In this document: in pieces, positions 2,610 to 44,700 of the stretch
How the letters are laid out: every line of letters starts with the position of its first letter
How positions within the stretch are numbered: position 1 is the stretch's first letter
Assembly: GCA_965202585.1 (NCBI GenBank)
Contig: CBDBBG010000103.1
Span: 1-64,000, forward strand
DNA: 64,000 nt
Origin: Thalia democratica
Taxonomy: Eukaryota
Direction of reading: 5' to 3'
Notes under the pieces: model-generated
What the model was told of the DNA's origin: nothing
Seen by the model: the letters and a program-made list of their open reading frames with translations, nothing else
Databases searched by the model: none
Translations under genes and position numbers: made by a program

Positions 2610-2690
2610 TTAGCTTTTTTTTTCTTTTAAGCAAAATTAGCTTTTTTTTTTCCTTTAAGCAAAATTAGCTTTTTTTTTCCTTTAAGCGAA
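2610..2690 (+). repeat. ~28-bp x3 tandem repeat (TAGCTTTTTTTTTCCTTTAAGCAAAAT)
   Basis: Three copies here and at ~13104-13180; a single copy at ~48376-48400. Confidence 0.85.
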
Positions 2691-3463: not shown

Positions 3464-4224
3464 AACAAATATTGTCAACTATTAATTAAATATTCTAATA
3501 AAGATGAAGATATTCTATAAAAGGTATTTCAAAACAAATGACTAGATCAAAACATTGTTTTGAACATTTTTTACTCTTTTTATATTGTGATACGGAAGCG
3601 TTAAAAATAACAAGCTTGATTGAACAGTGGCAGTAGTAATTAATTATTTATAAGTAGTCTGACATTAAAAGTCTAACTAATAATCTGGTTGCTGTTTTAT
3701 TGTTGAATTTAGTACAGTATTGTAAAATATTGGTTCAAATTAATAACTTTTTGTAGTAAATGTAAATTCGTCTCGACAATGTTTAATAAATTAAGTGGAA
3801 CCCGGTCTGTGAGCATGTAAATCTGGCCCGCTAAACCAAATTTTAAACTTACACTAGATAAGGGGTCAGAAAACCGCAGCCTATGAAGAGCAAAACAAAA
3901 TGCATCCCATAAAAGGTACAAACTCGTGCCCACGAAAATAACATCTTTAAATATAAATCTAGATTTCAGGATATTTAAAATTAAGAGTATAAACAGAATG
4001 AACGGGAAATTTAAAACTTGCACTATATTTACTGAAGTTTGAAGCGGCAAACTAAATAAAAAAACTTTCAAAATTAGTTGAACTATTTATTTCTTTTAAA
4101 CTTTTGAAACTATGCTGCCCGCCAAAAACTAATGTTGCTCATCTATTTTCTAGAGTGTACTTTTTTCAACCAAACATGCTGAGATAAAAGCAGGAGTCGG
4201 CAAACTGTGAATTTTATTTCAAAT

Positions 4225-12370: not shown

Positions 12371-13614
12371 AGTAAAGAATATGTTCAAATTTCTTTCTTT
12401 TTACAAAAATTAATTTAAGTATAATTATTTGAACGTTTTCCTAGTGAAATATATCTTTTATAAAATTTCTTTCCACTTCAAATAACTTATTTTAATTTTA
12501 AGTAATATGTACGTTACTTAAAAAAATTAATAGTAGTAAAGTATTTCTTAACTGACATTGTTTAAATGTCTGTTTTATTTTATCTGTTTATTTTAAACTT
12601 ATTCTAATGTACTTTATTAGTTTCTAGAGTAAAACGGTTTTAAATTTTAATTAAGAAAAAAAGCCTAGAACTTTTTTCTGCTTTAAAGATAATAGTCACT
12701 TATTATTTTTTAAATTTTACATGTAATTCTGTATATTGAAATAAATTTGAGCAATTAAATACTGTTTTCTGTTTTATTATTTATAAAAATCCTTAACAAT
12801 AAATATAAGTTAATTTTTACATATAAATTTAAGTTATAAAGTTATCTTAAAGTTTTAAAAACACAAAAGTTACTTATTAAGAAGTTATATTTTTATTGAT
12901 GAATTATTAGAGTTATAATTCAAAGTTTTGCCCGATATTTATCAATATATGTTTTTTAATTCTATAATTCGCTAGCACTGATTTATGTTTTTTAGTTATT
13001 TATGATAAACTATACTAAAAATGTTAGTTTTCGTTAAAATTTAAACTAAGACAAAAATTACTATGGCTTGTTAGTTAAAAAAGCAAAACTAAGGTGCTAC
13101 ACTTAGCTTTTTTTTTCCTTTAAGCAAAATTAGCTTTTTTTTTCCTTTAAGCAAAATTAGCTTTTTTTTTCCTTTAAACGAAATATATATTAAAGTAGGA
13201 CGAGTAAGTATATATTAATTCTAAAACACAATTGCTATTTCTATAACAAAAAGATAGTATACTTAATTTATTCTAGTCTTGAATTATACATAGTTCACAA
13301 TCAGTAACTAATACTGATGCTTAATGGCTTATATTCACTTATTAAATTTTTTTGCTACAATTTATGAAAGCATGATTTATTTCTTTAGTGGGAAAATTTA
13401 TTGATTTATGAGGTCTTTTGTAGCTATATAGGCTTTTTTTATTCTTATATGATGTAATTATTAGTTTTACTTTTTAAAATAATTTTTTTAAATTGATTTT
13501 TAGATAGCTAATAGTCTTCACTATTTTTAAAAACTTAAGTTACACATCATTCTGAGTTATTTTTGTGCATAAGGCATATGAGTCAATAATGCACGAAGTA
13601 AACTATGCATTATA

Positions 13615-13953
13615 TCAACAAGTATATCTTTTGCACCGTAATGGGTCAGATATGCACGAAAACACTTTAAAACAAATTGTGAAATATGCACAAATAGTCA
13701 ATTTTCACGAAAAGTCACTTTTATACGAAGACAATTTTGCATGGCGTCACTTTTCACGAAGGGTCTTTTTTTTCATGAAAATAGTTTTGCTCGTGGAAAA
13801 GTGAACCTTCGTGAAAAGTGTCTTTGTGCTAAAATTTCCTTCGTGCCAAAGTGTTCTTGTGCAAAAGTGACTATTCGTTTATGTTTGACACTTTGTTTAA
13901 AAGTGTCTTTGTGCATATTTGACCAATTACCGTGCAAAAGATATACTTATTGC
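13615..13953. mobile_element. Same palindromic MITE in unit 2
   Basis: Orthologous copy of 3122..3463. Confidence 0.7.
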
Positions 13954-16900
13954 AACAAATATTGTCAACTATTAATTTAATATTCTAATAAAAATGAAGA
14001 TATTCAGTATAATATATTTCAAAAGAAATGAGTGGATCAAAACATTGTTTTGGCCATTTATTTTTTACTCCTATTATCTCTTTTAAATATATTACGGAAG
14101 CGTTAGAAATAACAAGCTTGATTGAAAAGCGGCAGTAGATAAATTATTTATAAGTAGTCTTGCTTTAAAATTCTAACTAATAATCTGGTTGCTGTTTTAT
14201 CGTTGATATTAGTACAGTATTGTAAAATATTGGTTCAAATTAATAACTTCTGTAGTAAATGTAAACTCCACTAGTTAAGGGGTAAGAAAATCGCAGCCTA
14301 TGGAGAGTTAATCAAAATGCATCTCATAAATGGTACAAACTCGTGCCCACGAAAATAACATCTCTGAATCTAAATCTAGATTTCCAGATATTTAAAATTA
14401 AGAGTATTAATAAATATAAGGGAAATTTCAAACCTACACCATATTTACTGAAGTTTGAAGCGGCAAACTAAATAAATAAAACTTTCAAAATTAGTTGAAC
14501 TATTTATTTTTTTACATTTAATGAAACTATCCTGCTTACCAAAAACTAAATTGACCCTCTGTCTGAAAACATTGCTCATCTATTTTCTAGAGTGTACTTA
14601 TATTAACCAAACATGCTGAGATGAAAGCAGGAGCCGGCAAACTGTGAATTGATACGGGTTAAAGTGCTTGCCGTGAGCTTGCCGTTTTTATTTCATATTA
14701 AATGCAGCCAACGAAAAGTTAAATACGGATTGCAACATGTAAATGTTCAAAAAAATTTACGAAGTAGTCAGGAATATAAAATTAATAGTATTTGACATTA
14801 GGTGCATCTTACGGGAAATTCATAACTTGCACTAGGTATTTCGAGTATGTTATGAAGAATAATAACAAAACTACGATTGATAGTTGCAAATATTATAATT
14901 TTCAAAATTTGATTTGTGAACATTATATGCCAGCTGACTTCTGGTTTTGAGTCTAAGAAGCAATGGTTATAAATAAAAAAATTAAAAAAGTTCTAAAAAA
15001 ACGGAAATTTTGTGATTGTTTTTAAAACAATAAATACAATTGATACTGAATTTAACACTTAAAAAGAGTTTTCATTATTACTATGTTTATTTAATTAAGA
15101 TTTTTATTTTAACAAACTAAAAAAAAGGTTCTATAAAATGTCCCCCAGACACTATGCAAAAGTTTAAACCTCAAAGTATCTATCAAATATTTTCGATAGT
15201 TTTGTTTGAGGTTGAAATGCTTCAAGCAACAAAACAGACGCTTTGTTTTACTTTATCTAAAATTATTTACTATTAAAACTTAAATTTATAAGTTGCTCTC
15301 ATAATTTTATGTTAGTATTAATAAACTGCTTAAAAGTTCACTTTTAAATTTACAATAAAGTTAAACATACTTTGTATAAGTTTATAGAGTTTTTATCCTA
15401 TTTAAATTTCGTTTATATTAGTTTATTGTAAGATACTAAAATATTAAGACATTTTGTTTAAAATTGTATTAAATAATGACTGTTTTTTTTAATTATAGAA
15501 CAACTTTTAATGTATATTAAATAAAATAGTAATTTAAATCAAAAACTAATTCTTTAATATGATCGATTTAAATAGTTTAAACCTCAAAGACAACTAATAA
15601 TAAAGAATGTTGAAATCTAAGGGGGGAATGCCCCGGAGTGGTGGTCACATTAGTGACCATGTAAAACCATTGTGAAGGTTTTTAGAGGGTAGCTTTGCTA
15701 CATCTGGACTGGTGGAGGGTTTATAACTAGTCAATGATAGGTATAAACTTGAGACTAAGACAATTTCAATCAATAAACAAAATGAAGACAACGCAATGTT
15801 AAATAATGGAACTATTAAGCTTTCAATACCAATAAATACAAATCTAGAAAATTAGTAAATTAGTCAAATATAAACTAAGTTGTGTAATAGTTTAAATTAG
15901 TATAAGCCCTAACTTAATTGTATATATCAGCAGTTAAAAATGTTATTTTATTTTAAACTAGAAATAAACTGCTGGGTTCCAATTCATTTATTTATAGCCA
16001 AATACAGAACTTTTGTTCCAATAAGCAGCAAATACAAAAAAATTAGTGAACTGCTTCTAATCTTAAAGCCAAATACAGAAGTTTTGTTTAAATATGCAGC
16101 AAATACAAATCAGTTAAGTGAACTGCTTCCAATCTCAATGCCAAGTCAACAACCAATAAGCAGTAAATTGACAGCAAGCTAATTATGAAAAAAAAGTTTT
16201 TCTCTAATGCATCAGGAATGATGCCTTTTGTACTTAATTACAAGTTATTTGCAATTTACAATTTTGTTGATTGATGACTGGTTGTTTAATTTCAAGTTGA
16301 TAATAAAGAAACTACTTATTATTACGGATGCATTACCAAAGCATTGCAAGGTGATAAAAAATACGTAGATAAAGAAATGATTATTCAAAGAGGGTAGAAG
16401 TTGATTGAAAACTAAACCAAATTTTAAGCTAAAAAAAGTATTGGTTTCAAGTTTTAAAAGCGAATCTTTTTTAAGCTTTAATCGAAATATTTCTTTTTTT
16501 TTTTACTTTAATCTGTGAAGATTTTCATATGGGAGATTTTTTACAATTAAATAAATAGGCAATATCAACATCATTAATATAATTTTTTGTTCAGTCTTGA
16601 TTTGTAAAAATTTTTGGAAATTTAAAACATTTGTTTTTTTTTCAAATTAGACACGTAGTGTATGTTTAGTTATTTAGTAGCAGTTGTCCTCTTCAGATCT
16701 ACCAAGTATACTTGGTTATTGTTTACTAGTTTTAACTTTTGATAATTAGTTGTCAAGTTCAGTGTAGTGTGCGTTTCTACATTTTCGTTTTTAGGCTACA
16801 TTTTCATTCTCGCAGACCACAGTTGGCTGTACCTGATGTAATCTAATTTTTTAGAGGTTTCTAAGCCTTAGAAAGGTTAGAATATTCAAGAATTATGTAA

Positions 16901-20551: not shown

Positions 20552-23500
20552 CTAAACTACATCCACCTGTTGAAGTTAAATTGTCTAAGTTGAGTAATTA
20601 ACTACTAATAAACAAAAAAAATCTACAATTAAACGACGTTACTAGCAAAATGCATAAACTATATCTAGCTTATATTTTTAAACGTCATTAATTTGCATTT
20701 CAGCTCAATTACTTTTCTTAACAAGAGTTTTCAAGTTGAGATTTGTTTAAGCGTTTGAAAAACAAATGATCAAAACCTTTTATGACTTATGAATACTGAT
20801 ACAACTGTGAAATAAGTAACAACCATGGATTTAAACAAATAAGTGCAAACTAGATAAACACAGGTAAACGTTTAGAAAACTGATTATAAAACAGGTGAAA
20901 GTTTCAAAGATTAATTATTAAGAAAAAACAAAACTTACCATCTCCCCCTTGATTTTTGCCAGCTCCTCCCTGAACGCTCCTGCCAAGGGTCGAAGCGTTC
21001 CAGTCTTGAACAGAACCTTCTTCAAAAGTTCAGCCTGAAATTGTTTACGAGTTTTATAAAACGATCACGAATGATATCATTGAATAACTATCAATTATTT
21101 TAGATTCATGAAAAACAAGGCAGCAAAACAAACCAGATCCGGGTTTATTTCGCGTGGCAACGTCAGCATCCTGGCCTCCTCAACTGCGGCCCTGATGTTC
21201 CTCGGGCGAGAGAAGAGCAACACGGCCACGAGTGCACTTGAGTACACGTCTACACTTGAAGTGAATGGGCTTGTGTGCTGTTTGGAACAAAAAAACGTTT
21301 AACATGTAATTGTATTAAGACAAACTTTTATGAAAAAAAATTGACTGTAAACTTTTTTTGGAACCAGTTATTAAAAAACGCTACAATTTATAATTACCTG
21401 ATCAAGAGGCGAGTAGAGTTCTGTGCCGACGAACATCTTCGGGTCAACAAAGACCAGACCGGTCGGCGAATTGTCACTGGTCGGCACTGTAAGTATTGAG
21501 CAACAGTTTATAAAATATATCCATACTTATTTAGTTTTCAAAAGTTTTACGTTTATACTGAAGTTTGTACTGTTAGCTATACCACGAATATATATAACTT
21601 TTTTTTGAGTAAATCTTTAAAAAGTGTAAAGGAACTAAGACGAAAAACATAATGTTTATAAAAAAAAACTCACTGGAACTCTGAGACTCTCCGAAATCTG
21701 AAAGCTTTACCTGATGGCGCTCATCCAGAAAGATGGTTTCCGGATTCACATTGCAGTGGACCATCAGGTGTTCCTCGTGGAGGTACTGCAGCGCATCGAG
21801 GATCTGGTAAAAATTTTTAAATTTTTTACTTAATGAACAAAAAGATTCTTTTTTCATAAAATATTGTAAACTAGCCTACCAAATTTTATATGTTGATTTT
21901 TTCGTTAGTTTATAACTTTATAGCTAAATACTTTAGTCAAATAGTCCTGAATTCTTCACAGTCTATATATAAAGTAGATTTAAGAATCATAATAATGTCT
22001 ACAAACAAAAGCTAATTAAAATATACAATGTTATTGTGAAAAAAAAGGTTTACTTATGTCATATTATCAAAACGAAGGTTATCATCTTTATCTGGCAGAT
22101 TTGATTTTAATTATAATCAGAACGAAACTTAGGTATTTCAGCTTTAAGTTCATAGCTTTTATTTTTCCAGTTAATGACAGTTTATACGTATCTAATTTTA
22201 CATACCTCGTCAACAACACGAAAATTTTCGTTAGGACACACAACCTCTGCCCCACTGTGTCCTGTAGTTCTTTTAAAAATTGTTTTGTTTGCGCTTTGAA
22301 ACTGGACAATACATATCTGCGAGGCTGAAGTAAAATTATTTTATAAGTTTTTTTTTGTTGACTAGTAACGAAAAAAGTTAAAAACCATGTCTCTATGGAA
22401 TATTCTTTATTCTACCGAATTTATACTTGTTCATGTTATGCTTAATTTCAATATTGTACTGTTTGATTGGTGAAAATACTAAAATTTCTATGAATGTACT
22501 TTTGTTTAATTTAAGGCTAAATTGGTACTAAAAAAACTTACATATTCAAATGATACAAAACAAAACATTTTATAACCACCTATATTTTAAAACGTGTGAA
22601 GTCTTTAGTAAAATATATTACAATATAATATATTTAGCATGAAATACTAAAATATAACTTAATGTTCAATGTAGGAAAAACTCTTTTACATTTTTACTAC
22701 GGGTAGCTAATCTTAGTTATGAAATTAGTTTAGAAGTACAGCTAAAAGAATAATTTTGTTAGTTGTAAGTTTTTTTTTCATTGACAGAAACATTTTACAA
22801 AAAACTCAAAAAAAAATTGTAACCTTTCACACTTCAGAATATATTTTGTCGTATATGAACAGTAGTTTTAAATAAACATTAAATTTTTTATTTATCTAGT
22901 ATTAATATAAAAAACTATTCATTTTGAATAAGACCAAATGAAAATTTTTATTATGAATACTATTCATATAAATAATCATAATTGTAAACTTCGCAGCCTA
23001 GACATTTTTGTCTCAGTTTGTCGACCCTTACTTTAAAGTGTTAAATAATTTAAATGTAAATAAGTTACATTAAGTTAAGAAAAACATAAAGTTTGGTTTA
23101 AACAATATGTGCTTAGATATTTTTTTGTCGATTAAATATTTTTGTGTAGTTATTTTTTCAATAATTTATTTATACAGATTTAGCACAGGAATCAATTCAA
23201 AACAAACTGAATATAATATATTTAAAAAGATAACTTATTGAAAATTTACAGTTACTCAGTTTCATCGCAAAACGGATTTTCAAGTGTGGTTCTTCAATAA
23301 AAAAAATCACAAAGCATGTTTATTCTAAAACTTTGGCTACACTTTTATCAATTTTTGCAGTTTGTCAGTTTAATAGATTTTTTATTGCAAAATCACAGTT
23401 TGAAAATCCGTTTTGCGGTGAACTGTAAATTTTGTAATACATTACGTGTATTTTTTTCGAAATAAGAAAGTAAATTAAATTTAAAAAATTAAACAAAGTA

Positions 23501-25819
23501 AAAGTTTATATCTAACGTATTTGTTGGCACTTCCTTTGCAAATCCAGAACAATTTCCTCGTCCAAACTGGTTGAAAGGAGATCTCTATAAAAAAATAAAG
23601 TTGAAATTGAAAAAATATATATAGAACAACTTAGACGTTTATTTTTGTGTTTGTATTGTCTAAAAAATTTGTCAAGTTTTTTAACTTTCTGGTTAAGCAG
23701 AACCTTTTAATCTTTAAACCTTTCAATTTCCATTTTGATTCATTCAAATTTAACATTGTTTATTACAAATACTATCTTTAATTTTAATTTGTAATAAAAA
23801 CAAAAGTGTAAATGTAATGTTGAATCTACACATTATTTAAAACTTGTTATAGTTACTATTAACTCGCTTTGTGATGAAAAACAAAAGTGTAAAATTTAAT
23901 TTTTTTCTTTGTTCATAACTAGTTAAGAACTTCAACTAACCTAAGCTTGTCATCAAAGCTCTCCCACATAACGTCCACGTATTTCAACACGTTTTTGTGG
24001 GAGAACTTCGAAGAATGAGAGACCTCCTTTTCAGCGGTCATCTTGTCGTAGCTTAAAATTAATTTTATTTTAAGCGATTCCATAACTTGTATGTTGCTTT
24101 TGATATTTTAAAACAAAATATGTAAAATAAGCATTTGTAAATATACTAGATACAACTTATCTGCTTAAGTAATATAAATAAACTTAAAATTGTTTAGAAA
24201 TCATTGAGTTATGAAATATTTCTTCTAGAAGAGTTTAACATAGATATAAAATTTAAAACTTTTCTTTACTATTAAACACTAACAAACGTTTTTATACAAC
24301 TTAACTTTTATAACAGTCAAGCAGTAGATTCTTTGAGAAAGCACTTTAACTTTGCACATTACAAATGCGATATTTATTTTGGTGAAAAAATATGAAACTT
24401 ACAGGTTGTTGATAGTTTTAAAGTTTATAACATATTTCCGTTCGTCTGGCTGGTAGACAGCCTTGACCATCGTACCAAACGCTCCCTAAAATAAATAAAA
24501 CATAGTATGTTATTTAGCAATTAGATTGTTTTAAATATGAGATATTTTATTGGCAAGATTTATAGGACTTTGTATAGCTTACGTTTATAACAGTTCAAAA
24601 AGTTAAAACTATTTTGATAAAGTTGTACGACTATCGAAATATAAAACAGTTTTATTATCACATTTCTATACACTTTTAGATTTTTTTAACAATTGCAAAG
24701 TTTTGTTTAAAAATCTAACCTCTCTTATCCCTTCCAAAAAGTTAAACTTTAAAATCTTTCTGTACTTAATTTCTACCATCTCCATCTTTTTCCCAGCCTT
24801 TTTCATTCGCAGATCTTGCTAAACAGACAAAATAACTTATTAAAATCCAACAGGCATTTGTTTTCTTTTCAAGATAAAAAAAGTTTAACTTCTATGAGTG
24901 TTAAAAACTAGAAATTTAGAAAAAAAAACCTTTTTATTAACTTTACACTTGCATTATTTTTTGTTTAAAGCTTGGTGTAGAACAAAAGCAATATTTTGGT
25001 TAAAAAGACCTAAAACAAAATGTATTTTGCAACATTACATAAACAGAATCTTTTCTATGTAAAACTGTCATGAAAACCCTACAAAGTCTTACAAATAAAA
25101 ACTTGTACTAACGAAAAGAAGAGCATAAAACGAAGTAGCAGTTTAAACAAAATCCAAATCTAATCACTTTATTAAGACCTTTGGATTTAAAAAATATGTT
25201 TATCGCTCACGCACGAGTACTAAAACAAAACCGCTAACTTTTACTTTTTGCTCTCTTTTACAGCGCCAACAGCACAAGAAGCCAACCAGGACACCCAACA
25301 TCAACAGGACACCCGCAGCAATTCCCACAGCGAGAACAATTGTCATTGTACCGTCACCACTTCCGTTTGCACACCGTCTCCTTCACCCTCTTCATCGTTC
25401 TTCTCCGCGCAGACCACTCTGTGAGGCCTGGGCAGAGGCCTGCAGCTCTTCAAAGTCTTGACGTTTGCACCCATAACCCTCACGAACTCAGCACATTTTG
25501 TACGGCTCCCTTCCTGGGGCAGCCGATAGTAGCCGTCCAAGCCTCCCTCCAACTCCCCGCTCCCGCTCAAGATCTTTCTCACTCCCTCCGATTCCACGCC
25601 CCTGAAATTCACCTCCGTCAAACCCTTTTCTCCACACAAATCGCCAGCTTGTTCCCCCGGTCCAACCACAAACAGCTTGACCTCCCCTGCGTCTTTAATA
25701 TTAATATAAACTATTATGAAGAATGTTCGGATATAAAAATCTAAATAGTTTACAAAAAAATATACCTACCTGTACATAAACCAAAATCAGTTCCAAAAAT
25801 AAACATAGTTAATCCAAAC
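20552..25819 (-). CDS. C-type-lectin-domain receptor pseudokinase (CTLD-TM-kinase fold), 12 recognisable exons, one frameshift between CTLD and TM
   Basis: Exons with AG/GT boundaries and matching phases: 25770-25819, 25245-25710, 24720-24818, 24403-24485, 23941-24051, 23517-23584, 22206-22324, 21674-21803, 21398-21486, 21134-21277, 20939-21034, 20552-20566. The translation gives CTLD (LCGEKG...GLDGYY...KCAEF...SCRP...VVC), TM (IVLAVGIAAGVLLMLGVLVGFLCCW), LEGIREGAFG, AEKEV...HKNVLKY, LQYLHEEHLMVHCNVNPETIFL, KLSDFG, GTELYSP, SVDVYSSAL and LLKKVLF...LRP. The start exon was not found; the first and last small exons are less certain. Confidence 0.85.
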
Positions 25820-27073: not shown

Positions 27074-27790
27074 ATTCAATTTAACATGTCGTGTTCACAT
27101 TCAGTAAAGACCAGGACAGGTATTTTCACTGCTTATACTGAGAAAGTTACAAAATGTGAGGCAGAAAGGAGATGCAGAAAAAGAGGTGAAATCCTAGCAC
27201 CTATTACGAACAAGAGGGACGCTCATAAAATTTTAAAGCTTTTCAAGTCAAACACTAAAAACGCAACGTGTGGTGTCAGCATTGACGACGGTTCTGACTA
27301 TTGGGTAGGTTTAGATGTGACTTACACAAAAGATGAAGATTCAAAGATATTTTCTAATGGAATAAGGTGGCATGAGAGGAAGCACGGCAAGATCTACCAT
27401 AACATGCTTGAATCGCACACCGATTGCGCTGAAGCATTGTTCATGCCCGTCTTTCACGAGGATAGACCTTATGCGATTGTTAACACGCAAAAGAAGTGTT
27501 TGAAAGAAAACAAGTACAAGTACCTGTGTCTGAAACCGGCTGAAAAAGTATCTGCTGAACCTATTAGTCAAGATGGTGAACTTGAAGATGGTGAAATTGG
27601 TGTTAATGGTGTTTTTATATCATCAGATATTGGGCTGCTTGTGATTCTAGTGTGTGTTATTTTGGCTTACATTCGATGGCAATCAGTTAGGAGAATGAAA
27701 ACGGAAATCAGTGAATTGAGGGAAGAGATCGGAATGTTGAAAAGAACTGCGTTCAAAGATGAAGGAAAAGATAAGCTTCAAACAAACTAG
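27074..27790 (+). CDS. C-type lectin-like type I membrane protein (CTLD + TM + short coiled-coil tail), main exon
   Basis: EAERRCRKRGEILAPI, DYWVGLD, DCA and KKC...KYLC give the CTLD cysteine pattern. TM is IGLLVILVCVILAYI; tail is ISELREEIGMLKR. An in-frame acceptor TTTTTTTTTTAG lies at 27061-27073. A candidate signal-peptide ORF (MQRIVYIVGYFALLAST) starts at 26787, splice join unresolved. Confidence 0.88.
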   Translation: MQFNMSCSHSVKTRTGIFTAYTEKVTKCEAERRCRKRGEILAPITNKRDAHKILKLFKSNTKNATCGVSIDDGSDYWVGLDVTYTKDEDSKIFSNGIRWHERKHGKIYHNMLESHTDCAEALFMPVFHEDRPYAIVNTQKKCLKENKYKYLCLKPAEKVSAEPISQDGELEDGEIGVNGVFISSDIGLLVILVCVILAYIRWQSVRRMKTEISELREEIGMLKRTAFKDEGKDKLQTN

Positions 27791-28759: not shown

Positions 28760-29260
28760 TTGTATAATCTAATCCTAAGCCCAACCACAGTATCTTAATT
28801 ATTTTCTACAAAAAAGATAAACTTAAAACAGAGTTTAGCCTATTATACTCATTGGTTATCTTGAGTACTAAAGTAGAAACTAAATATACTAAGGGTAAAT
28901 GACCAATGTATCAGTGCATCAGTAAAAACTGACTTTCAGTTGTGGTAAATAGAGCTTGATATATGTTACTGATATTTTTTTCATACCACTTCACTCAATT
29001 AGACAGAACTTTCTATCTCTACCTTTGTACTTAAAACCTAATCAAATCAACGATCATAAAAGCTAATATTGTTTCAAAAATGTTTGTCTCAAAAAGCTTC
29101 AAAATTTTATGAGCATCCCTTTTAAAGGTAATAGGTGCAAGGATTTCACCTTTTTCCTTGCACCTTTTTTCAACCTCTAATTTAGTTCAGTATAAGCAGT
29201 GAAAGTACCCGTCTTTGTCTTTACTGAATGTGAACAAGACATAAAACATGTTTGCACTTA
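28760..29260 (-). pseudogene. Inverted, decayed CTLD paralogue
   Basis: Minus strand has SCSHSVKTKTGTFTAYTE, KGEILAPITFKRDAHKILKLF and later KVLSN*VKWYEKNISNIY (cf. KIFSNGIRWHERKHGKIY), with multiple stops. Confidence 0.8.
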
Positions 29261-31617
29261 ACTATTACTCATAGTCAAAACTTATTTAGCATCATTAGAA
29301 ATAATGCTATTTAGTAACAGTAAATTAATGGTAGTTATAAAAATGTATTTCAGACAATAGATACACCATGATCATTAATAATAAATGAATAAAACACTTT
29401 AAGCTAAAAACCATAAAAAACTAAATTTACTATGTGTGAGATCAAATTTTTTTGAATATAAATTTCTAAATAAAATTCAACTACTTCAGACAGTTCAGCA
29501 CCAACAATAACAAACAATTTTAGTGATTAAGAATAGTTTACAACTTAAAGATGTGTTTAAAACATTTGAAAACATGGTTTCTATAGCTTTACCTTTTTGT
29601 CGTACACAAAGTATAAAACTATTACCAACAAAAAAGTTTTGTGCCTAATAGACTCTTACAAGTTTTGTAAAAATATTTACTGAACTATTATATTACCACT
29701 TTGTAAAACTATTTCTATCCACATACCTAATACATTGTTTTAGTTACAAAGAGAACAATTTGATGTTTACAGCTTATTAAAGTATAATTATGTATGACCT
29801 GTAAAAAAACTAAACTTTGTTAACAAAATCATATTTAAAAAAATTAGCATACTACCCAAAACAAATATGAAAAAGGTTTTATTAGAGTATATTTTTGTAA
29901 TAATATATATCCTATACAAAGACAGTGTACAACCAAACTACTTTTTGTAGGTTTTTTTGACAAATAGTATAGTACAATAGTAGTGTTACTAGATCCTCAA
30001 ATATAATGCACAATGCTAGCTTACTAAAAACAAAGTTCTCTAGCTAATAACAAAGTAAGTAAGCTAAACAACAGTTGAGTTGTTTAAAGCTTATTCGAAC
30101 AAAGATATTTCACAGCTTCACATGAAGATTTAGTATTACTACTACTGTAGAATTTTATTAATGACAAAAGAACTTAACTAACAAGTTAGTAAAGTATTTA
30201 TTGTTTTAAAACCATAGAACTTATGTTTATTTAGTATGTTTGTGTTAAAATTTAATAACCAATTCTTACTGCTTATAAACAACCAACAAAACTTTTACAA
30301 GTTTTTAAAAGTACAACTAAAACTAAATATACTTTGAAAATTTTATACTTAAACAGGTTTTCTATATCCCAACTACACTTATAGAACCACAACATTTTTA
30401 TCAACTCTTTTAGAAAATAGTTAAGAGTATTGATAAACTACAGACATAATATGCAAAACATTTTCTTAAACAAATAACTATTATATAAACATCTTTTTAA
30501 TTTCTTACATAGCTAAAAAATATCTTAATGAAAAATAAACAACTACTAACTTAAATTAAGCAAGCTTATAAAAATAAATGATAAAATTTTCTATCCTTTT
30601 ACATGTTGTAGTACTTTCTTCACGCCAGTTAGTTGTCTTCGTTTATGAAAAATTTCAATGTTTTTTCAAGTATAACTTCAAATATAACAACATTCTTCAT
30701 ATAATATATAACAAACTCAAAATATCTTCTTGTAATATTTTGCATTCCAAACTGAGAATAAAAATTTCTGTACTACACATAGACCAAAACGTCATAATGA
30801 AAATATTTAGCTACAGAACGATCGTTACGCCGATAAAATTTTTATGAGAAATTACCTAATTTGGAAAAAATTCGCTAATCTTTCTATCTTACTTGAACAT
30901 TTTGTTTAAACTAATATCTGAGCTATACAATCAGCAGAAACAAAACGTTTAACTAAACATTATAACATTTTTATTTAGCTTAACAATAGGGCTCATGAAA
31001 TAAGTTTTATTTTTAACGTTTTAAATTCCAATCTAGTAGTTTTAAAAAACTGTTATTAGAATGTTTTGAAGTAAATAAAATTATTCAAAACCAATATAAA
31101 CTTGTAAACCACACTCGAAGATTTAAAAGGCTCACATGTGTAACGCTGGTAAACTCAAAATCGAAGTTTTGTAGGCAAAAAAAATGTGCATATCATTTGT
31201 AATTGAGCTTAACAACTTGCGTTTAATCATATACAATTTTTATTAAACTTAATCAAACTCAGATTAAAACAATACTACTTCGTTTGTTTTAGATTTGGGG
31301 CAGGAGACTTTACAAGTCTGCAAGTTAATTTATCAGAAAAAGAGCTTCGCTTGCCAAACTTTAATAAGTCTTTGCAGGTCTTGATTTAGTTTAAAGTTTT
31401 ACTATAATACTTATGATTAAAATAATATTTTATAAAAACTCCTAACAAAAAAATAAAGCTTGTTGTAGTATTATAAAACTGTTAAAGTTGTTATTCTTTT
31501 AATAAACTTTTGTTTACAAACAATTTTTTATAACTATTGCTTTTATACTTCACTAAAATAGTATTATACAAAAAGTGTTTTTAATCGCTTGTAAATTTTT
31601 CGCACCCCTTAACAAAT

Positions 31618-32993
31618 GGCAAGGTGTCAGAATGGCACAGCGACGCTTTAGCACGGTTCGTCAATTGTGCACAGTGGGTTACTTTAGCACGGCGTCACTT
31701 TCGCACGAGGTCATTTTAGCACAACGAGTCACTTTTGCACAGTGGATCACTTTTGCAAGGCGTCACTTTTGCACAGGGGGTCATTCTTGCAAGGCGTCAT
31801 AGCACGGTGCGTCACTATAGCACGGTGGGTTACTTTAGCACCGTAGATCACTTTTGCACGGCGTCACTTTTTCACGGGGGTCAAGTTCGCATGGAGCCTT
31901 ATTTTTGCAAGAACTAAACCTTTTCAATATGAGGATTTATGTAACATTTTATTTAACTGATTTAACTGTTAGTTTGAACTAATTTTTGTTTTTTAATTGT
32001 TAATAGTTTTTTAAGAAAAACTTAACTTTATATTTTATATTACTTATGTATATAGTAATAGTATTAAGTATTAAAACACTACTTAATATCAAACCTAAAA
32101 GTGCTTAAATTTGTTACTTCCAATCATATCAAATTTTAACAATACATTTTAAATTAAGTAAATAATAAATAATATGTTAAGATAGTAAAGATAGTAACTA
32201 ATCAATGCTTAAATGTATTTTTTTTAGTTAAACGACAGCTTAAATTTTTCAAAACTTTGTCAAAAAAAAACTCAAGAATACAAAGTAGTAAAATTGTTTA
32301 AAAACAAATTAAAATCTGTTTTTAGATACTTTTAGTGTATTATTTTTACGGGTTTCGTGATTAAAATATAATTATTTTTTTACTTTGTACCATATGGTAA
32401 TACAATAATCTTAACATTCTAAAGTTTTCACTTTAATTTTTTTTAGGCGAGAAAATTTAGTAAAACTAAGAAAAGCTTTTAAGTATTAACCCTGTTTCTT
32501 TAAATTAAGCCTTATAAATTTAATTAAATTGACCAAATAGCTTAAAATTTTTGTACTATACTTTTTGAAACAACTATATTTTTTTAAATATCGAATTTAG
32601 TTTCATACAACATAAACTTGTTTTAGATTAAATTTTACTTAGTACTACATTTAAAAAATTATTACAATACTTCCAAAATAAAGTTGTAAATTAAGTTTAA
32701 ATATTTTACGAATCTAACGCTTATTTACTTTTAACTTTCAGTTTAGTTTTTAAACACGTGTTTATATATTACAGTGTTCTAAGTATTTATAATTAACAAA
32801 AAACTTTCAAATGAATTTTTCAAACGTATTTGTGCGAAATAACGCTCAGTCAAAAAAAAACTTTTTTCAAAGACGCATCAAGCAAAAATAAAAAAGAAAG
32901 AAGGAGTGCAAAAATGACGCTTGGTGGTAAACTGACGCCGTGCTAAAGTTACGCACCGTGTTAAAGTGACGCCGTGCTATTCTGACCCGCTCC
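31618..32993. mobile_element. Non-autonomous Mutator/foldback-like DNA transposon (~1.38 kb) with 9-bp TSD
   Basis: Termini GGCAAGGTGTCAGAATGGCACAG / reverse complement GGAGCGGGTCAGAATAGCACGG. Subterminal 16-17-bp tandem repeats (GTCACTTTTGCACGG) in opposite orientation at each end. Flanks TTAACAAAT (31609-31617) and CTAACAAAT (32994-33002). No transposase ORF. Confidence 0.8.
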
Positions 32994-33084
32994 CTAACAA
33001 ATATACTATGCATTGCCACTGCTGTGTACTAAAATGGAATGAAATGTATTTCAAAATATTTGTTAAACAAAACGCAATCTTTTT

Positions 33085-36399: not shown

Positions 36400-37790
36400 T
36401 ACCTGAACGTACCTTCTGCTCTCCTTGCGGGTGCCACCTCTATTTATGTAACATTTTCTGTGCCTGAAAATTATTAAAACCAAACAATAAGTTTTAAAAA
36501 TAATGAAAAAGTTAAATTGCTCATGAAGAACTGCCTTTACAAAATGTTTAAAATAAATTAAAATACTGCATAAATTTCTCACTAGTGATAGTATGTAGCT
36601 ACATTTAAACACTGTTTGAAATTTACTTGTTTAACAGCCCAAAGCAAGTTGTAAGATTTGAATAATTATAAACAATAAGATTTACCAAAATGTATTAAAG
36701 TTGTTACTTACTTGAACATCACTTTTCCTCTTATAATGCATCCAGCAAGACTACTACCAGGACAACCACCTGCTATAAGGGCCACAACCATTACATTCCA
36801 ATGGTTGTTCTTTTGTTCTGCCCTATTGCTGCTTGGTGAAATGCTTGGACCCTTTTCACAAACAATTCTATAAGTTTTAAGCATCGGCCTGCAGCTAATG
36901 ACCTTTTTTAACCTAGAATTTAGTAAAAATTCTGCACAGCTTTTTCTTTAACAATGCCATAGTATATGTCAAACTCTGTCTCCTGGCTTACATTTTATTA
37001 CTTCCAAAAGAAATAAATAATGTTTAAGTAACTTTAATAACTTGAGCTTTATTCTCCCCTTGTAGTACAGCCACCAGAACAACGACCGCAATACAACAAA
37101 CAATGATTGCAACAACCATAGCAGTTCAATGGTAGCTGTTCTCTTCTTCAGCTCCACTGCTGTTTGCTGAAAAACTTGCTACCTCGTCCTCTTCGCACAC
37201 AACACTAAAACGGCAACGTCATTGGCCTACAGCTGCTGACCTCTTCCGTGGCCTGACTCAAGGACGAAAATAAAAGTAATACAGCCGCTGCTTGCTGTTG
37301 AAAGGCGGTAGTATTTGTGGTTCTTGACCTCCTTGCTACCATCCAAACCCTCGAGGTACTCCCTCACTCTTTTACTATCCATGTACCTCAATCCATTTCC
37401 CTGACAACCTTCTGCTCTCCTTGCGGGTGCTACTTCCACCAGATTTTCTGTGTCTGAAAATTGTTAAAACCAAATATTAATAGCGAACACCAGTTGCATT
37501 AACGGTTTTCCTCTGCATCAACTTCAGTGTTGCTTGCTGAAGTACTTTCCCACGACGTCATCAGCCTGAAGCTGCTAACCTCTTCTGGTACTGATTTTAG
37601 TACTATCAGAAACGCTTCTAGTACTTATCAAGCTGATTTTCTTGACTTTCATTTAGATTATCAGGTGTATCCTCACTTTTTACCGTCTATGTTCCTAAAA
37701 CCATATCCCTTACATGTTCAAAGACAATAAGATTCAAGTTTACAAACTTTTTTTACAACCACTTTGAAGCCCTCTATACTAGTAGTTTTG
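36400..37790 (-). pseudogene. Tandem decayed CTLD-TM exons of the receptor-kinase family
   Basis: 37040-37460: ARRAEGCQGNGLRYMDSK...YYRLST...GCITF...SSCRPMTLP/SVVCEEDE...MVVAIIVCCIAVVVLVAVL. 37500-37790: CKGYGFRNIDGK...EEVSSFRLMT. 36720-36880: IVCEKG...MVVALIAG. 36410-36470: start of another copy. Stops and frameshifts throughout. Confidence 0.75.
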
Positions 37791-38779
37791 ATGAGCAATA
37801 AATATATTTTATTCTGCATTTCAACTTTACTAACTTTTCCATCTTTACATATAAATTTGAGAAAAGCTATTTGGTATTTCATTTTTTAATAACTTAATTT
37901 GCACAACTATTAAATTAATTCTACCAGCTCTTCTAAATAAATACAATTTTGCAAAGCAAAACCGTCATTTTTTTGCTTTATTTAATTTTATTGAAAATTA
38001 ATTGAAATTTTGATGTTTGTATCTTTTTCAATCACAGTTTCAAAGCATCTTAAGTTAATTTCCTTGTACAGCTTAAACAAATCTTCTGAACTACATTACA
38101 AGATTTTTTTAACCCAGCCATGAAGCTTTTAATGTGTAAACAGAATTATGATAACTTAAAAGTTCTCCACATCCATAAACTCAATTTGTAGAACTGTTTG
38201 ATTAGTTCTACCAACTCATCTAAAAAATTTCATTTGAGAAAAATTAAAACTGTATTTTTTAAACTTGCTTTGAGCTTGTTGATATTTCACAACTGAATTT
38301 AGAATTTGTTAATTTTACAATGTCAAAAATCTTTTTCAAAAAGAAGTCAGTATACACAATAATCAAAGTCAATAGATCTTTAACTAAAGTTTAAATGAAA
38401 CTAACTTCCTCGCCTCCGAACTGGGTGGGGCATTTCTGTGTATTTTCTCACTTGGAACACATGCAGTAGTTTGTGTGAAAATGTTAACTGTATTTTTTTC
38501 TACTTTTTTACATCAATTTTGATTTAAGTAATTTTTATCATCGCATTAAATAAATATTATTTGCGATAGCTGTCTAAACATTTGTACAAATTGTTTTAAC
38601 TAAAGATAAACTTATTATGAGCTGGCTAATGTTTTTATTGCTGTTTTGAGAGCATAGCCGAAAAAAATGGGTACTACAAGTTCTTATTTTAACAGTTATG
38701 AAACAGCACAAAAATTGTTAAAGTTTATTAAAACTTAACTTTATTGGACAGTCTTTTTTTAACATTCACACCTCTACAG

Positions 38780-41700
38780 AGGTAAAGAACACCAATTCTA
38801 AACTTTTTATTACTTTGCACACCTTATCATTGGGCCCGTACAATGGTGTGCCACTAAGGAGATCGTTTCTCACATTCACAATTTCTTCTTAACCTTTCTT
38901 AGCTGTTAGAAATTAAAAGAAAAGCAGCATTTCTATCCATAATAATTCTTTTTGGAATGCTTTTCCAGCTTTGTGGTAAACTCGAACAACTTTGAACCCG
39001 TCACCGATTCAAAGGCTTGCTTTGGTGTGTGCGGGCAAGTGAACAGGAGTACAGCTATCAATTCTCATCAATACATGTCCACTGAAGACCTTAACTTATC
39101 TGAGAAAAAATTTTAGTAATGAAAGACGACTACCAACCATAACATTTGAAAGTTTTAAGCTTTACTCTGAACCCTTAGCTGTCGGTTTCGCCATCGGAAC
39201 CTCTAACAGTGCCGATTGCAGGCTTCTGATAGATAAATTAAACGATTTATTTTAAAATTACATTCATATAGCTTAATTCATATACATTTTACATAAAAAC
39301 TTTTTATATATCTTAATTATCATTACACTTTAACTTTTTTTAGGTTTTATTTAAGTATAACTTCTAAAAAAAGTTTATGAAAAACCTTTCGGTCTTTCAC
39401 AAACCACTTTTTAAATTTTGTTACTGTTACAACAAACCAGCCTATAACAAACCTAGTCAATGGACATAAAGAGATCAGTGCCAACGGCTATATTTGGGTG
39501 AACGAATAAGATCATTTGCATTTTTAAGCTTTTCTTGTTTTTAATTTATATCTCATCGTTTAGATTTTTCTGCAGTTTTAAAAGCAGGTTTTCTAAATTT
39601 TGAACTGGAGAAAGCAAATCTTGAAAGCTTAAACAATTGTTAAACATTGAAAATGGTTTCTGGGTTCACATTGCAGTGGACAATCAGTTGTTTTCGTGCA
39701 GATACTGCAGTGAATCGAGGATCTGGTTATTTAATTAAAAAATGATTAATGAATTAATTGACTTATAAAGTTTTTGTAATAATTTTATATTTATTACTTA
39801 TAGAATACTAAAAAGTTCTCAAAGCATAGTGACGTAACAATTTAACCAACTACTATTTTTCATAAAAATTCTCTTCACATTCATTTTGAATTTACATTCT
39901 TAGAGGAAGCAAACTTTTCATATTGCTATCCAAATTTAAAGTTCTAGTTATGTTAGTTCAGTTAATTTACATTTTAGCTGCATAGCTTGAATAATATATT
40001 TTAAGTTACTGAAGTTCTTAACTTGTTGATCTTATTAACTAGCTGCTTTATTATCATTAAAGTTAAGCTAGTGGTATTATCCAAGAAAATGTTGACAAGT
40101 AAATCTTTTCCCTTGTAGACTTTGTGTAATTTAGTTAACAAAACATGCCACGCTTAAAAGTCTTTGCTCATTACAAAAGTTCTTGTATAGAGATTACTTT
40201 ATCATATAAGCAAACAAGTTAAGCTTTCTAAAGCCTATTTAAATAACCTTTATAGCTATAAGTGAAACCAACAAAACTCTTGTTTAGTCTACAGAAACAA
40301 ACTTAGTTCATGTCTTAATCATTGAATGTGAATTTTTATCTTAATTAATTTATTTTTCTTTTATACTTGATATTTCTTTAACATTTCATACAACTCAGTA
40401 ATGCTCATAGTTCAAAGTGAACTCTAGAGAACTGGATACTGTTTAAAATATACAAATATTTTGTTTTCTCATGTCTAAGAAAATGACTGCATTGAGTAAA
40501 ACCCATTTTGACATAATACTGTTTTTTATTATTTTTGTACTTATGCTCATAAAACCCAGTTTGATTAAACTCTGTGATACAAAGAGAATCTATGCATTGC
40601 AAATATTTCCTCAAAGAAGAACCCGTCACTATGCTCATATAGATATTTTTCTGACGTATTTGTTAGATTCTAATACAAGCAACATACCTCTTAGTACAAT
40701 TTAAACTACACACAACGGATTTTATATCTGAAAACTTGCTGGAAAAATATGACAACATCAGTTTCAACGATGACGTGTGTATTTAAACGGTTCACATGTT
40801 CAGTTTCAGATGAGCCATCATCTTTGAACCAAGTAACTCGACAGCTTTGAAAATTTGCAAAAAAATATTTTTGCCCTCAGCTCTAAAAGACGAAATAACG
40901 TGGTAAAAGATTTTAACTCTTTTTGTTTTAAAGTTGCTGAATTTTTTAGTTTAAAAAAAAACTAATAAACAAGATAGATCAATTGCAAGTTTATTTTAAC
41001 CTAGCTATACACGCTGTTTTGTTTTTAGTTTAAACAACTTTTTTTAATTACCACACATATAAACTTTTTCTTTAAACAAACTAAGGTTGAAACATAAACA
41101 TTCACATATCTAATAAGAAAGTAATTAAAAGGACGACTTATAAAGTTTTTGTAATAATTACTATTATGAATTTGTTTACCTGTTTTTCAGGCATGTACAA
41201 ATAAGTCCTTGATTGATATTCTGGTATAAATTTTACAAGTCATTCTTTGGAACAAACCTTCATCCACAACTGCTTATTATCTTTCATCAACAGCTGCTGG
41301 TTCATTTTTTTTAGAACGAACTTTCATGGATGGTAATTAACTGCTGGTTCTCTTTCATCCACAACTGCTGCTTCTCCTTAACCCACAACTGATGATTCTC
41401 CATAACCCACAATTGCTTGTTCTCTTTCATCCACAGCTACTGGTTTTCCTAAGTCTTTAGTAGTACCAACAGTAGTTTTACATTTTCAACTAGTTCTTTT
41501 AAAACAAGAATGGTAGTTGCTGGGTTCTCCTTTCCAGCTACCATTTGTGTTTTAGCTACCTTTTTTTTGTTACCTTTTTTTTTTCTTTATCTCTCTAAGC
41601 TACAAGTAGTATTTATAGCTTAACGAAATTTATTTTTTGATATATCTATACAAAGTTGAGGATACAAACTTTTTGTAATTAATGGTTACTTAAAGAACCT

Positions 41701-44700
41701 ACAACTAAAACATGCAAAAAAATACAGCTCAATTGTTTAACACGACCATCAACACCAATTATATGTATTTATCTCAGCAATGCTGATGATGGCCGAAAAC
41801 ATTACCACTTCATGTTTTGTCGAAGTTAAGACTAACTTTGCGTTTTGCACAATCTTTGGATTTCAAAGATTATATTTACGTTTAAACCCCGACAACCAAG
41901 CAGCATTCTTCTGTAATTATATAGTTTCATTCAGCCAGTTATAGTCCAAACTTCCAGTTTTAGAACAAATATAGCTTGAAAGTCTACTTGTATAAAAGTG
42001 TACGAGTAGTAACAAACAAGAATAGTTTATTTTTATCTGAACTTTCAAGAAAAACATTTTAATTAAAAAGTCTTTAATTAAAAAATCCTTGTTAGCACTT
42101 ATAAAAGTACTAACAAATTTTACTTTCCAACTCTTCGTAGAACACATCAATATATTTAATGATGTGTTCGTAGTGAAACTCGACAAGTTTTCCAGCTTCT
42201 TTTCTAACATCTTGCCAGACGGTGTTGAAAAAACTAATTATTTCCAGTTTGATTAAATATAAACAGTTATCTGCAGTTTATAAAAATGTTAATTGCAGTC
42301 ACTTTTTTTTATACTTGACTTTTAAGCACATACAAATGATTTCCAACTTTATTTAAACAATTTAGGAACTCTTCTTTTAGCATCTTGAGTTGTTAGGAAT
42401 TCTTAGTTTGAAACTTCCTTTCAAGTATTTGGTGATATTTAATCGGATAATATTGAAACAAAATACATTTTCTTTCAACAATTTTTATATGCAGTAAATT
42501 TTGACTTCTAAAACTTTTTTTTGTCTATCCTGCTGGTAGACTAATATATTCAATGTAGCAAAAGTTCCCTATAAAGCAAATTAAGTGTTATTTATAACCG
42601 AACTATTACCTTTTTAAGAAAGCTGAGGTCTTCTGCAAAAAATTAATTTCAATTGTTAACTAACTTCTCTTAGCTCTTCCACCAAATCAAACTTCAATAT
42701 CTTTCCTGTGGTGTTAGACAACATTCAACTCTATTTTCTCCTAAATTTTTTTGACTGCCATCTTCACATGCAGATCTTGCTAATAAGAGAAAATAAAATT
42801 GTTAAAAGTTAACATCTGTTTCTTTTCAATATTTAATAAGAAAATTCTTTAAAGAAGCACTTTTAACTATTCAAATACAATATTAATTTTGTTGGAAAAA
42901 GTTATGAATCTTTAACTTAGAGGTTTTGGACAGTTTTAAAATTTTATGACGTATTTCTGGTAGACAGCCTTAATCATCGTACCAAAAGATCCCAATTTAA
43001 AACAAGTTAAAATGAAACATAAGGTACTTTTATTGGTATAACTTACTTTTATAATACTCTATAAACGTTTATACTGATTTTGTAAGTTTTTACGAAAGTG
43101 AAAACATTAAATAGTTTAGTTGGCACAAACTCTTATGCTTTTAGATTTTGTAGTTATTGGAAAATTTATTTCAAAAAATAACTTCTCTTAGCTCTTCCAC
43201 CAAATCAAATTTCGAAATCTTTCTGTGTTTGACAACATTCAACTCTATTTTCTCCAGAACCTTTTCGACTGCCTTCTTCACATGCAGACCTTGCTAATAA
43301 GAGAAAATAAATTTGTTAAAAGTTAACATGTGTTTCTTTTCAATATTTAAAAAGAAAATTCTTTAAAGAAGCACTTTTAACTTTGCAAACACAATTTTTT
43401 TTTTGGAAAAACACACGAATCTTAAACTGAATATTTTGGACAGTTTTAAGGTTTATGACGTATTTCCATTCGTCTGGCTGGTAGACAGCCTTAACCATCG
43501 TACCAAAAGCTCCCTACAAATAAGTAAAACATAAGTATCTTATTTAGCAATTAGATTGTTTTAAATATGAGATATTTAATTGGTAAGATTTATAGGACTT
43601 TGTATAGCTTACGTTTATAACAGTTCAAAAAAATTAAAACTATTATGATAAAGTTGTACAACCATCAAAATATAAAACAGTTTTATTATCTCGTTTCTTT
43701 ACACTTTTAGATTTTTTTAACAATTGCAAAGTTTTGTTTATAAATCTAATCTCTTCCAAAAAGTTGAACTTTAAAACCTTTCTGTATTTAGTTTCTGCCA
43801 TTTCCATCTTTTCTCCAGCTACTTTCTTCATTCGCAGATCTTGCTAAAAATATAAAATAATTTTATTGGAAAATAAATTTAATTTTTTTTGGAAAAACAC
43901 ACGAATTATAAACTGAATATTTTGGACAGTTTTATGACTTATTGCTGATGTCTGACTGGTAGACAGCCTTGACCATCGGACCAAAAGATCCGAATAAAAA
44001 CAAGTTTAAATGAAGCATAAGATGATTTGGTTAGCTATAAATACTGTGTATAGCTTACTTTGATAATAATCTATAAACATTATTAATAATTTTGTTAAAA
44101 TTTGCGAGAATAGAAACATTAAGTAGTTGCCATAAAATCTTTTGTTTTTAAATTAGATAATTTTTGAAAAACTTTATTTTCAATCTAACTACTCTTAGCT
44201 CTTCCTCAAAATCAAGTTTCTTACAACCTTCTATTTACTCCTTAACCTTTTCGACTGCTTTCTATACATGCAGATCTTGATACTAAAATGAACGTGTATT
44301 TGTTTTCAAATCTTTCCTGAAAAAAATAGAGGATAAGTTATGGTGAAAAAATTGTTCAAAAATCTTCTACTTCGTGTTTTGCAGATTATTAGTTGTAGTA
44401 ATGTATTAGTGTTGATTGTACCTTTTTGTTGATTGTAGTAAAACTAATGTACTTAAGACAAACAACAATTTATTAGTATTTCATCTAAAAATTTCCTTAT
44501 TACCAGTACAATTAATATGAAAACATATTTAGTTGTTCTCTGTACTTAATTAAAATCTCTTCGCACCTGCAACTTTTTACAATTTATTTGTAACTAACTT
44601 AAGTTTTATTTTTTCGATACAGTCCAACAACCTATTGCTATCTAGACAACAGCGATTAACAGTTTGCTTGTTGCAGAACTATTTGCAAACTCAATTTCAC

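Follow-up and report, generated by a model that had tools for sequence, protein, structure and literature searches.

A probable lineage-specific receptor family in Thalia democratica joining a lectin-like ectodomain to an eIF2alpha-type kinase domain, with a conserved pseudokinase clade and a frame-broken copy

The stretch of DNA analysed here (64,000 nucleotides, hereafter the window) comes from the pelagic tunicate Thalia democratica and corresponds to positions 1 to 64,000 of the forward strand of contig CBDBBG010000103.1 in assembly GCA_965202585.1. Between 20.4 and 26.0 kb its minus strand carries a receptor gene whose encoded parts are a start exon, an ectodomain with four cysteines followed by a transmembrane helix, and a kinase-like domain. 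The locus probably belongs to a receptor family restricted to this lineage, whose single-pass proteins couple a C-type-lectin-like domain (CTLD) outside the membrane to a kinase of the eIF2alpha type; one conserved subclade of this family would be catalytically dead, and the window copy, which belongs to it, is broken. C112, the scaffold to which the window belongs, is small and unplaced within the 802-Mb assembly of this animal; the window is AT-rich (about 26% G+C), the exons being richer in G+C. The gene is invisible to annotation based on open reading frames; the initial annotation of the window, which was made from the letters alone and described a CTLD receptor with a conserved pseudokinase tail, had already remarked that the reading-frame track hides it almost entirely.

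The architecture is best appreciated in two related genes that a search of the whole assembly located on the chromosome-scale contig C1. Gene B (L016, 474 residues) and gene A (L017, 477 residues), both modelled with the splice sites of the window gene, contain no stop codons, and in each of them ectodomain and transmembrane segment share one frame; the single exon for both parts that had been drawn in the window therefore holds for the two C1 genes, but is frame-broken in the window itself. On these models, the intact architecture of the two genes is predicted to comprise the start exon, a small Cys-rich ectodomain, the transmembrane segment and a dead Ser/Thr-type kinase fold. Across introns and exons the gene in the window matches gene B with an identity of 90-97%, and on both sides its surroundings run in the same order as C1:31.20-31.22 Mb, with 90-96% identity; such close agreement indicates that the window copy is either the other haplotype of gene B or a duplicate that arose very recently.

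The exon borders were set by inspecting splice sites and phases after three-frame translation of the minus strand over 20.4-26.0 kb, where short open segments with kinase motifs form a chain. This gave eleven minus-strand exons, all of them bordered by AG/GT and, over exons 3-11, compatible in phase. The candidate start exon (exon 1, MFIFGTDFGLCT, 25770..25806) ends in phase 1 at the donor GTAGGT and is conserved in the C1 copy. Exon 2 (25245..25692) encodes the four-Cys ectodomain of about 95 residues, with a predicted compact C-type-lectin-like fold (25373..25692), and then the transmembrane helix and a basic juxtamembrane stretch ending in CCWRCKREQK (25245..25346), the frame of which differs from that of the ectodomain in the window copy; its donor is the 5' splice site GTAAAAGT, whose read-through signature recurs in most ectodomain and transmembrane exons of the family. 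The juxtamembrane region and the start of the N-lobe are found in exon 3 (24720..24818), which ends in LEGIRE, and are followed by the Gly loop GAFGTM and beta3 (KYVIN, with Asn at the Lys position) in exon 4 (24403..24485), by helix C, with its Glu kept, and beta4 in exon 5 (23941..24051), and by most of the beta4-beta5 insert in exon 6 (23517..23584). Exon 7 (22206..22324) runs from beta5 to helix D and holds two indels relative to both C1 genes, exon 8 (21674..21803) comprises helix E, the degenerate catalytic loop HCNVNPET and DFG, and exon 9 (21398..21486) the activation segment and a degenerate APE (GTELYSPLDQ), while exon 10 (21134..21277) covers the region from helix F to helix G and exon 11 (20939..21034) helices H-I. 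Reading past GEM and the following gtaagt at the end of exon 11 gives six codons, VSFVFS, and then a stop (TAA, 20918-20920), which is the likely tail of the protein. The initial annotation had listed twelve phase-consistent exons; eleven stand with canonical borders, and the twelfth (about 20552-20570, reading VDVV and a stop) is unsupported, the last kinase exon meeting a stop shortly after helix I in all three distant paralogues inspected.

That the C-terminal half is a kinase fold is evident from exon 8, which alone passes the Pfam Pkinase profile (PF00069; 33.9 bits against a cut-off of 31.7, E = 2.9e-8), scores higher with it than with PK_Tyr_Ser-Thr, and as a family profile matches 2588 kinase chains in the PDB. 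The fold also has the marks of a pseudokinase: the beta3 Lys is replaced by Asn (KYVIN or KYLVN) and HRD by HCN, and in the dead clade the catalytic-loop Lys and Asn have become Asn and Thr, respectively, and the APE Glu has been lost. Gene A and gene B share the Asn for the beta3 Lys and the HCN for HRD, and both have GFG where the window copy reads DFG. The motifs first read from the window were recovered at the expected places, namely the Gly loop IREGAFG, which spans the junction of exons 3 and 4 (IRE/GAFG), KYVIN in exon 4, HCNVNPET in exon 8 and the GTELYSP from which a Ser/Thr-type lineage had been proposed, in agreement with the Pkinase profile scoring above that for tyrosine kinases; the intact DFG, in contrast, was found to be a property of the window copy and not of the intact C1 genes. 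From the residues lost, the products of gene A and gene B are predicted to lack phosphotransfer and nucleotide binding.

The dead state appears to be older than the divergence of the two C1 genes. Between gene A and gene B the ratio of nonsynonymous to synonymous substitution rates (dN/dS) of the kinase domain is 0.32 (dS 0.16, dN 0.05; bootstrap 0.19-0.53; Fisher p = 2e-5) and, since both genes already share the dead state, this value argues that the domain was kept after catalytic death. For the ectodomain and transmembrane exon, dN/dS is 0.29-0.33 against Tara Oceans fragments of related animals; between gene A and gene B the ectodomain is far more diverged than the kinase domain, with dS saturated. 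The dead clade thus seems to encode true pseudokinase receptors that are kept by purifying selection. A conserved pseudokinase tail, as claimed for the window gene, is therefore borne out by the intact C1 genes but not by the window copy, for which dN/dS against gene B is 0.58-1.0 on very few changes and to which the selection result does not extend.

The gene belongs to a larger family. A profile search revealed at least 25 ectodomain and transmembrane exons genome-wide, nine of which are followed, 3.8-7.2 kb downstream and in the same orientation, by a match to kinase exon 8; these nine are spread over six contigs (three on C1, two on C4 and one each on C112, C7, C8 and C5). Most of these exons end at a like 5' splice site, beyond which the translation ends in -KVS or -KVG, and this recurrent ending argues that the exon is internal and not terminal; a transcript in which ectodomain and kinase exons are joined would be consistent with all of these features. 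Convincing signal-peptide exons are present in several paralogues. Outside the dead clade the catalytic residues are largely conserved: all three distant members examined closely keep the Gly loop (GGFGFV, QGSFGMV, QGGYGQV), the loop HCD-[IV]-[KT]-P-x-N and DFG, all three of those with N-lobe exons found keep the beta3 Lys (KYAIK, MYALK), two of the three keep APE (YMAPEQ, FTAPEQ), and at eight more distant loci inspected the catalytic-loop Asp, Lys and Asn and DFG are likewise kept. Judging from these motifs, most family members look catalytically competent, and the loss of catalytic residues would be the trait of one small clade (C1:31.17-31.21 Mb and C112), formed by gene A, gene B, the window copy and a decayed copy in the window, and not of the whole family; the initial annotation, in which the loss was taken for a family trait, is contradicted by the eight loci just mentioned. 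The third of the distant members examined closely, a paralogue at C1:42.9 Mb (L024, L025:3998-4447) that is active-looking by its GGFGFV, ALK, HCD and DFG, reads GTPLFRPKDQ at the APE position, so that degeneration of APE is not confined to the dead clade.

The type of kinase was assessed exon by exon with family profiles. With the exon 4 profile (Gly loop to beta3), GCN2, PKR, HRI and PERK came ahead of every other natural kinase (E 0.016-0.3), and with that of exon 5 (helix C to beta4) GCN2, PKR and PERK ranked first (E 0.0015-0.015); the exons are short and the E-values (0.0015-0.3) marginal. Spacing gives a second line of evidence. Relative to textbook values, the intact models show wide gaps between beta3 and the HRD position, 123 residues where canonical kinases have about 94, and between the helix C Glu and beta5, 54 where they have about 25-29, with the 18 residues from HRD to DFG as in canonical kinases, so that a surplus of about 29 residues, close to the insert of some 25 residues first noticed before beta5, falls between beta4 and beta5, where eIF2alpha kinases carry an insert. 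Active paralogues have the catalytic loop H-[CSA]-D-[IV]-K-P-x-N, and the tyrosine-kinase forms HRDLAARN and HRDLRAAN were not found at this position in the family. Their GT..Y.APEQ presumably resembles the ..SPEQ of PKR and PERK. The agreement of independent exons makes an origin of the kinase domain from an eIF2alpha-kinase-like ancestor moderately likely.

The fold of the ectodomain was addressed by structure prediction. An AlphaFold2 model built from a 25-sequence alignment, which replaced an earlier and discarded model from three sequences with a predicted local distance difference test score (pLDDT) of 48, reached a pLDDT of 83.5 and a predicted template modelling score of 0.76, and has the order beta-alpha-alpha-beta-beta-beta-beta. 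Foldseek searches of the PDB and of Swiss-Prot models returned lists made up almost entirely of CTLDs, with template modelling scores of about 0.5, although nothing was significant (best E = 0.24). An exhaustive scan of 48,161 chains, independent of Foldseek, gave nearly only CTLDs among the top 50, with Z-scores of 4.6-6.8, all of them below 8 and so in a range that, by the tool's own warning, may reflect a common arrangement. The alignments to CTLDs, compact forms such as that of intimin included, have deviations of about 3.2 A over 81-91 of some 100 residues, and the uniformity of the match list appears to be a stronger argument for the CTLD fold than the Z-scores. Searching the Atlas with the model gave the bacterial Lcl_C and Fib_succ_major domains, which share a Pfam clan with Lectin_C. 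The top match to the model among AFDB clusters was the N-terminal part of the fish protein A0A6J2S7J3 (476 residues, 23% identity).

The cysteines of the model can be set beside those of known CTLDs. Canonical CTLDs have one disulfide joining alpha1 to beta5 and another joining beta3 to the loop after beta4. The four near-invariant Cys of the family (19, 66, 83 and 94 in gene B exon numbering) lie in the model in helix 1, before the strand 67-73, after the strand 76-82 and within the strand 90-95, that is, at positions where these two disulfides may form; beta2 (YYRL or WYRF) is followed by the beta3 Cys after about eight residues. The long loop with the EPN/QPD and WND motifs for calcium and carbohydrate is absent from the family alignment. 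As modelled, the ectodomain would be a compact CTLD-like fold, neither a member of the Lectin_C family nor a sugar-binding C-type lectin, and the CTLD of the initial annotation survives as a predicted fold and putative disulfide pattern, but neither as a match to the Lectin_C profile nor as a domain with a sugar- and calcium-binding loop.

Besides the low structural Z-scores and the marginal profile E-values, several results weigh against the interpretation of the locus as a copy of a receptor family with CTLD-like ectodomain and eIF2alpha-type kinase. At the level of sequence, none of the 25 family members matches Pfam Lectin_C (PF00059) at E <= 1, the ectodomain family profile found no CTLD among PDB sequences, and hhalign gave a probability of 0.8% for a relationship between the ectodomain and the CTLD of the neighbouring gene. 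On the side of the kinase, the exon 8 profile places GCN2 level with MAP2K7 and MEK1, and that of exon 10 (helix F) has no match in the PDB. Exon 1 is weakly hydrophobic in the window copy and in gene B, which makes its role as a signal peptide doubtful. A search of 1.84 billion representative proteins yielded none of full length that carries this ectodomain, so that the joining of exons 2 and 3 is a prediction from the genome. Of the sequencing runs that match the gene none is recorded as RNA, and the contigs of two of them (X1 and X2) are genomic, show no splice joints and come from a haplotype or individual that has diverged. In the window copy itself exon 2 contains a premature stop and exon 7 is scrambled, and the dimerisation or decoy mechanism considered below is one that we infer throughout. 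The same 1.84 billion representatives do include seven exon-sized open reading frames that match the ectodomain profile; two of these were traced to Tara Oceans marine metagenomes, on contigs of 647-845 bp that are too short to reach kinase exons. A word-indexed protein search with the open frame of exon 8 yielded no candidate, and a feature search of the ESM Atlas gave no usable match.

As assembled, the window copy is frame-broken and could not make a full receptor. One G of a GGG run present in C1 gene B is absent at 25363-25364, and the resulting frame break (25343..25364, minus strand) brings the ectodomain frame of exon 2 to a stop at TGA 25343-25345, leaving the transmembrane helix in another frame; a micro-intron bridging this change of frame was considered and rejected on inspection, no GT..AG pair of the right length class being present there. 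In exon 7, relative to both C1 genes, a T has been added to a T run (22275-22279) and a GT to a GT run (22236-22242), and these two indels exchange the conserved ILKELQDTVGQRLC for an out-of-frame patch of about 15 residues. All three indels lie in runs prone to slippage, so that they may be either real mutations or consensus errors. It is an even chance that they are real, in which case this locus would be a pseudogene or null allele making no receptor and only the C1 genes would be functional. The premature stop and scrambled exon 7, the dN/dS of 0.58-1.0 on few changes and the presence of a clearly decayed copy 11 kb away are in keeping with this possibility, as are runs X1 and X2, which contain exon 2 of gene B exactly, yet just 34% of the words of the window. 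The contigs of these two runs carry the gene B state at both exon-7 sites. Homopolymers and GT microsatellites, however, are typical sites of consensus errors, and it is in such runs, on a small unplaced scaffold, that the indels occur; those of exon 7 total 3 nt and create no stop, the other exons are intact with every splice site kept, and the dS of about 0.04 to gene B leaves little time for decay.

If the intact members of this receptor family are considered, the question of where they act arises. The proteins would be type-I membrane receptors, which is also how PERK is built, with its sensor in the lumen and its kinase in the cytosol. It might accordingly be proposed that they are PERK-like sensors resident in the endoplasmic reticulum, with the lectin-fold domain in the lumen and with dead members modulating an unfolded-protein or glycoprotein-sensing pathway. 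PERK and other eIF2alpha kinases rank first for kinase exons 4 and 5, and the topology (N-terminal domain, one transmembrane segment, basic stretch, kinase) is like that of PERK; about 25 fast-diverging ectodomains, tandem duplication and pseudogenes, on the other hand, suit surface or non-self receptors better than a housekeeping sensor, and we regard this proposal as unlikely. For lectin-fold receptors at the cell surface, a role in non-self sensing is plausible: the fast-evolving ectodomains, the tandem duplication, the nearby pseudogenes and the co-duplicated neighbour with CTLD and transmembrane segment would fit a birth-and-death family for variable ligands. A more specific scheme, which we consider rather improbable, is that lectin-fold pattern receptors are wired to an eIF2alpha-type kinase so that an outside non-self ligand shuts down translation, as a membrane-bound analogue of PKR would do, and that the dead members are regulators, or decoys against inhibitors from pathogens. 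Regarding the dead members themselves, eIF2alpha kinases are switched on by dimerisation, and dead members would for this reason most likely act by ligand-dependent pairing. The dead-kinase receptors may bind an outside ligand and pair with themselves or with active paralogues, in which case they could serve as allosteric partner, scaffold or dominant-negative decoy.

On a rival view there are two separate transcription units, the first for a lectin-like membrane protein without a tail and the second for a pseudokinase in the cytosol. This would accommodate the finding that no run recorded as RNA covers the junction of exons 2 and 3, and the tail-less genes with CTLD and transmembrane segment that adjoin, but it is quite improbable: at nine loci spread over six contigs the two parts keep the same order and orientation and lie 3.8-7.2 kb apart, exon 2 ends in phase 0, with no stop codon before this point, at the 5' splice-site signature that recurs in the family, exon 3 starts in phase 0 outside any initiator Met context, and no stop interrupts the intact C1 models.

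The single-pass receptor proposed here, with its CTLD-like ectodomain and eIF2alpha-type kinase, can be compared with several known systems. It is like PERK/EIF2AK3, PKR, GCN2 and HRI in having a Ser/Thr kinase with an insert between beta4 and beta5 and in the ranks of exons 4 and 5, and it shares with PERK the type-I layout of sensor domain, transmembrane segment and kinase; however, its sensor is a lectin-like fold of 95 residues and not a luminal domain of the PERK/IRE1 type, and it belongs to a multigene family of about 25 members, with the window clade dead, whereas each eIF2alpha kinase is a single gene. Other single-pass proteins with a dead kinase fold, such as ErbB3, PTK7, RYK, ROR and the kinase-homology domain of receptor guanylyl cyclases, work via partners; they belong to the tyrosine-kinase or cyclase lineages and have unrelated ectodomains, unlike the eIF2alpha-like Ser/Thr type found here. 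With regard to the ectodomain, the C-terminal domain of intimin, Link/LYVE-1, Lcl_C/DUF1566 and the C-terminal domain of Bd2740 also have a beta-alpha-alpha-beta core without the long loop, and these compact CTLDs are among the best structural matches, with no detectable sequence relationship. The position of the Cys at what may be the sites of the canonical animal disulfides suggests that the ectodomain descends from an animal CTLD by loss of the loop.

Fusions of CTLDs with kinases have been described in other lineages. According to PMC2680970, the Hydra receptor Sweet Tooth (Reidling, Miller and Steele 2000) combines four CTLDs with an active tyrosine kinase, and it thus differs from the salp family, which has one compact CTLD-like domain and, in its active paralogues, the Ser/Thr-type loop D-[IV]-K-P-x-N. 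Plant C-type lectin receptor-like kinases, present with one member per genome and having a calcium-dependent lectin domain (PMC7758398), show the same order of C-type lectin domain, transmembrane segment and Ser/Thr kinase. They differ from the salp receptors, in which the calcium- and sugar-binding loop is absent and eIF2alpha kinases, and not receptor-like kinases, rank first, and the two groups are independent inventions. The salp family is thus a lineage-restricted combination of known kinds, namely receptor pseudokinases, CTLD receptors and eIF2alpha-type kinases; a receptor of the combined type, lectin fold with eIF2alpha-type kinase, was not found described in the full-text literature searched. 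Outside the TGF-beta receptor family, single-pass receptors with a Ser/Thr kinase are not known from animals, and we know of eIF2alpha kinases only as four conserved stress sensors and not as an expandable receptor family. If confirmed by transcripts, a family of about 25 genes coupling a minimal lectin-fold ectodomain to an eIF2alpha-type kinase, with a conserved dead subclade, would represent a new receptor design in a chordate lineage and a natural system in which to study how pseudokinases arise from, and regulate, active paralogues.

The window also holds the remains of a second receptor copy on the minus strand (36771..43991), in which duplicated pieces of exons 3/4, pieces of exons 8 and 10 and pieces of the ectodomain are preserved. 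Several tandem duplicates of the exon 3/4 pieces lie at 43991-42939, one of which (42992-42939) reads KYVIK and so keeps the beta3 Lys, as had been stated for one pseudogene exon. The exon 8 piece (39740-39601) has HCNVNPET and in-frame stops, the exon 10 piece contains two stops, and the ectodomain pieces at 37463-37090 and 36947-36771 are frame-shifted; the paralogue with HCNVNPET that had been placed at 39650-39723 is accordingly present as to its motif, but is a pseudogene.

Head to head with the receptor gene lies a neighbour on the plus strand (27074..27787), which encodes in one open frame a classic-looking CTLD with the WVGL motif, a transmembrane segment and a short tail; its CTLD scores 14.9 bits with Pfam Lectin_C, below threshold. 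The 5.4-kb block that contains it has copies at 57657-62714 of the window, C1:31203831-31209278 and C1:31163052-31168373 (identities of 96%, 93% and 82%), and has been duplicated as part of a two-gene module that includes the pseudokinase receptor gene. An assembly gap of 100 N (57557-57656) immediately precedes the copy at 57657-62714 and makes the layout of the scaffold's second module uncertain. Part of the neighbour block is flanked by an inverted pair of about 170 bp (27086-27254 and 29081-29242; 79-85% identity), also found at the C1 copies, which may be a small foldback element.

Other repeats were noted in the window. A unit of about 2.3 kb at 12000-14269 is repeated at 1510-3769 and 47263-49491 (96% and 88% identity) and has dozens of copies at C7:52-54 Mb (72-82% identity). 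At 31600-33000 lies a repeat of about 1.3 kb that is dispersed over many contigs, with dozens of copies that are 70-77% identical, and is probably a transposable element.

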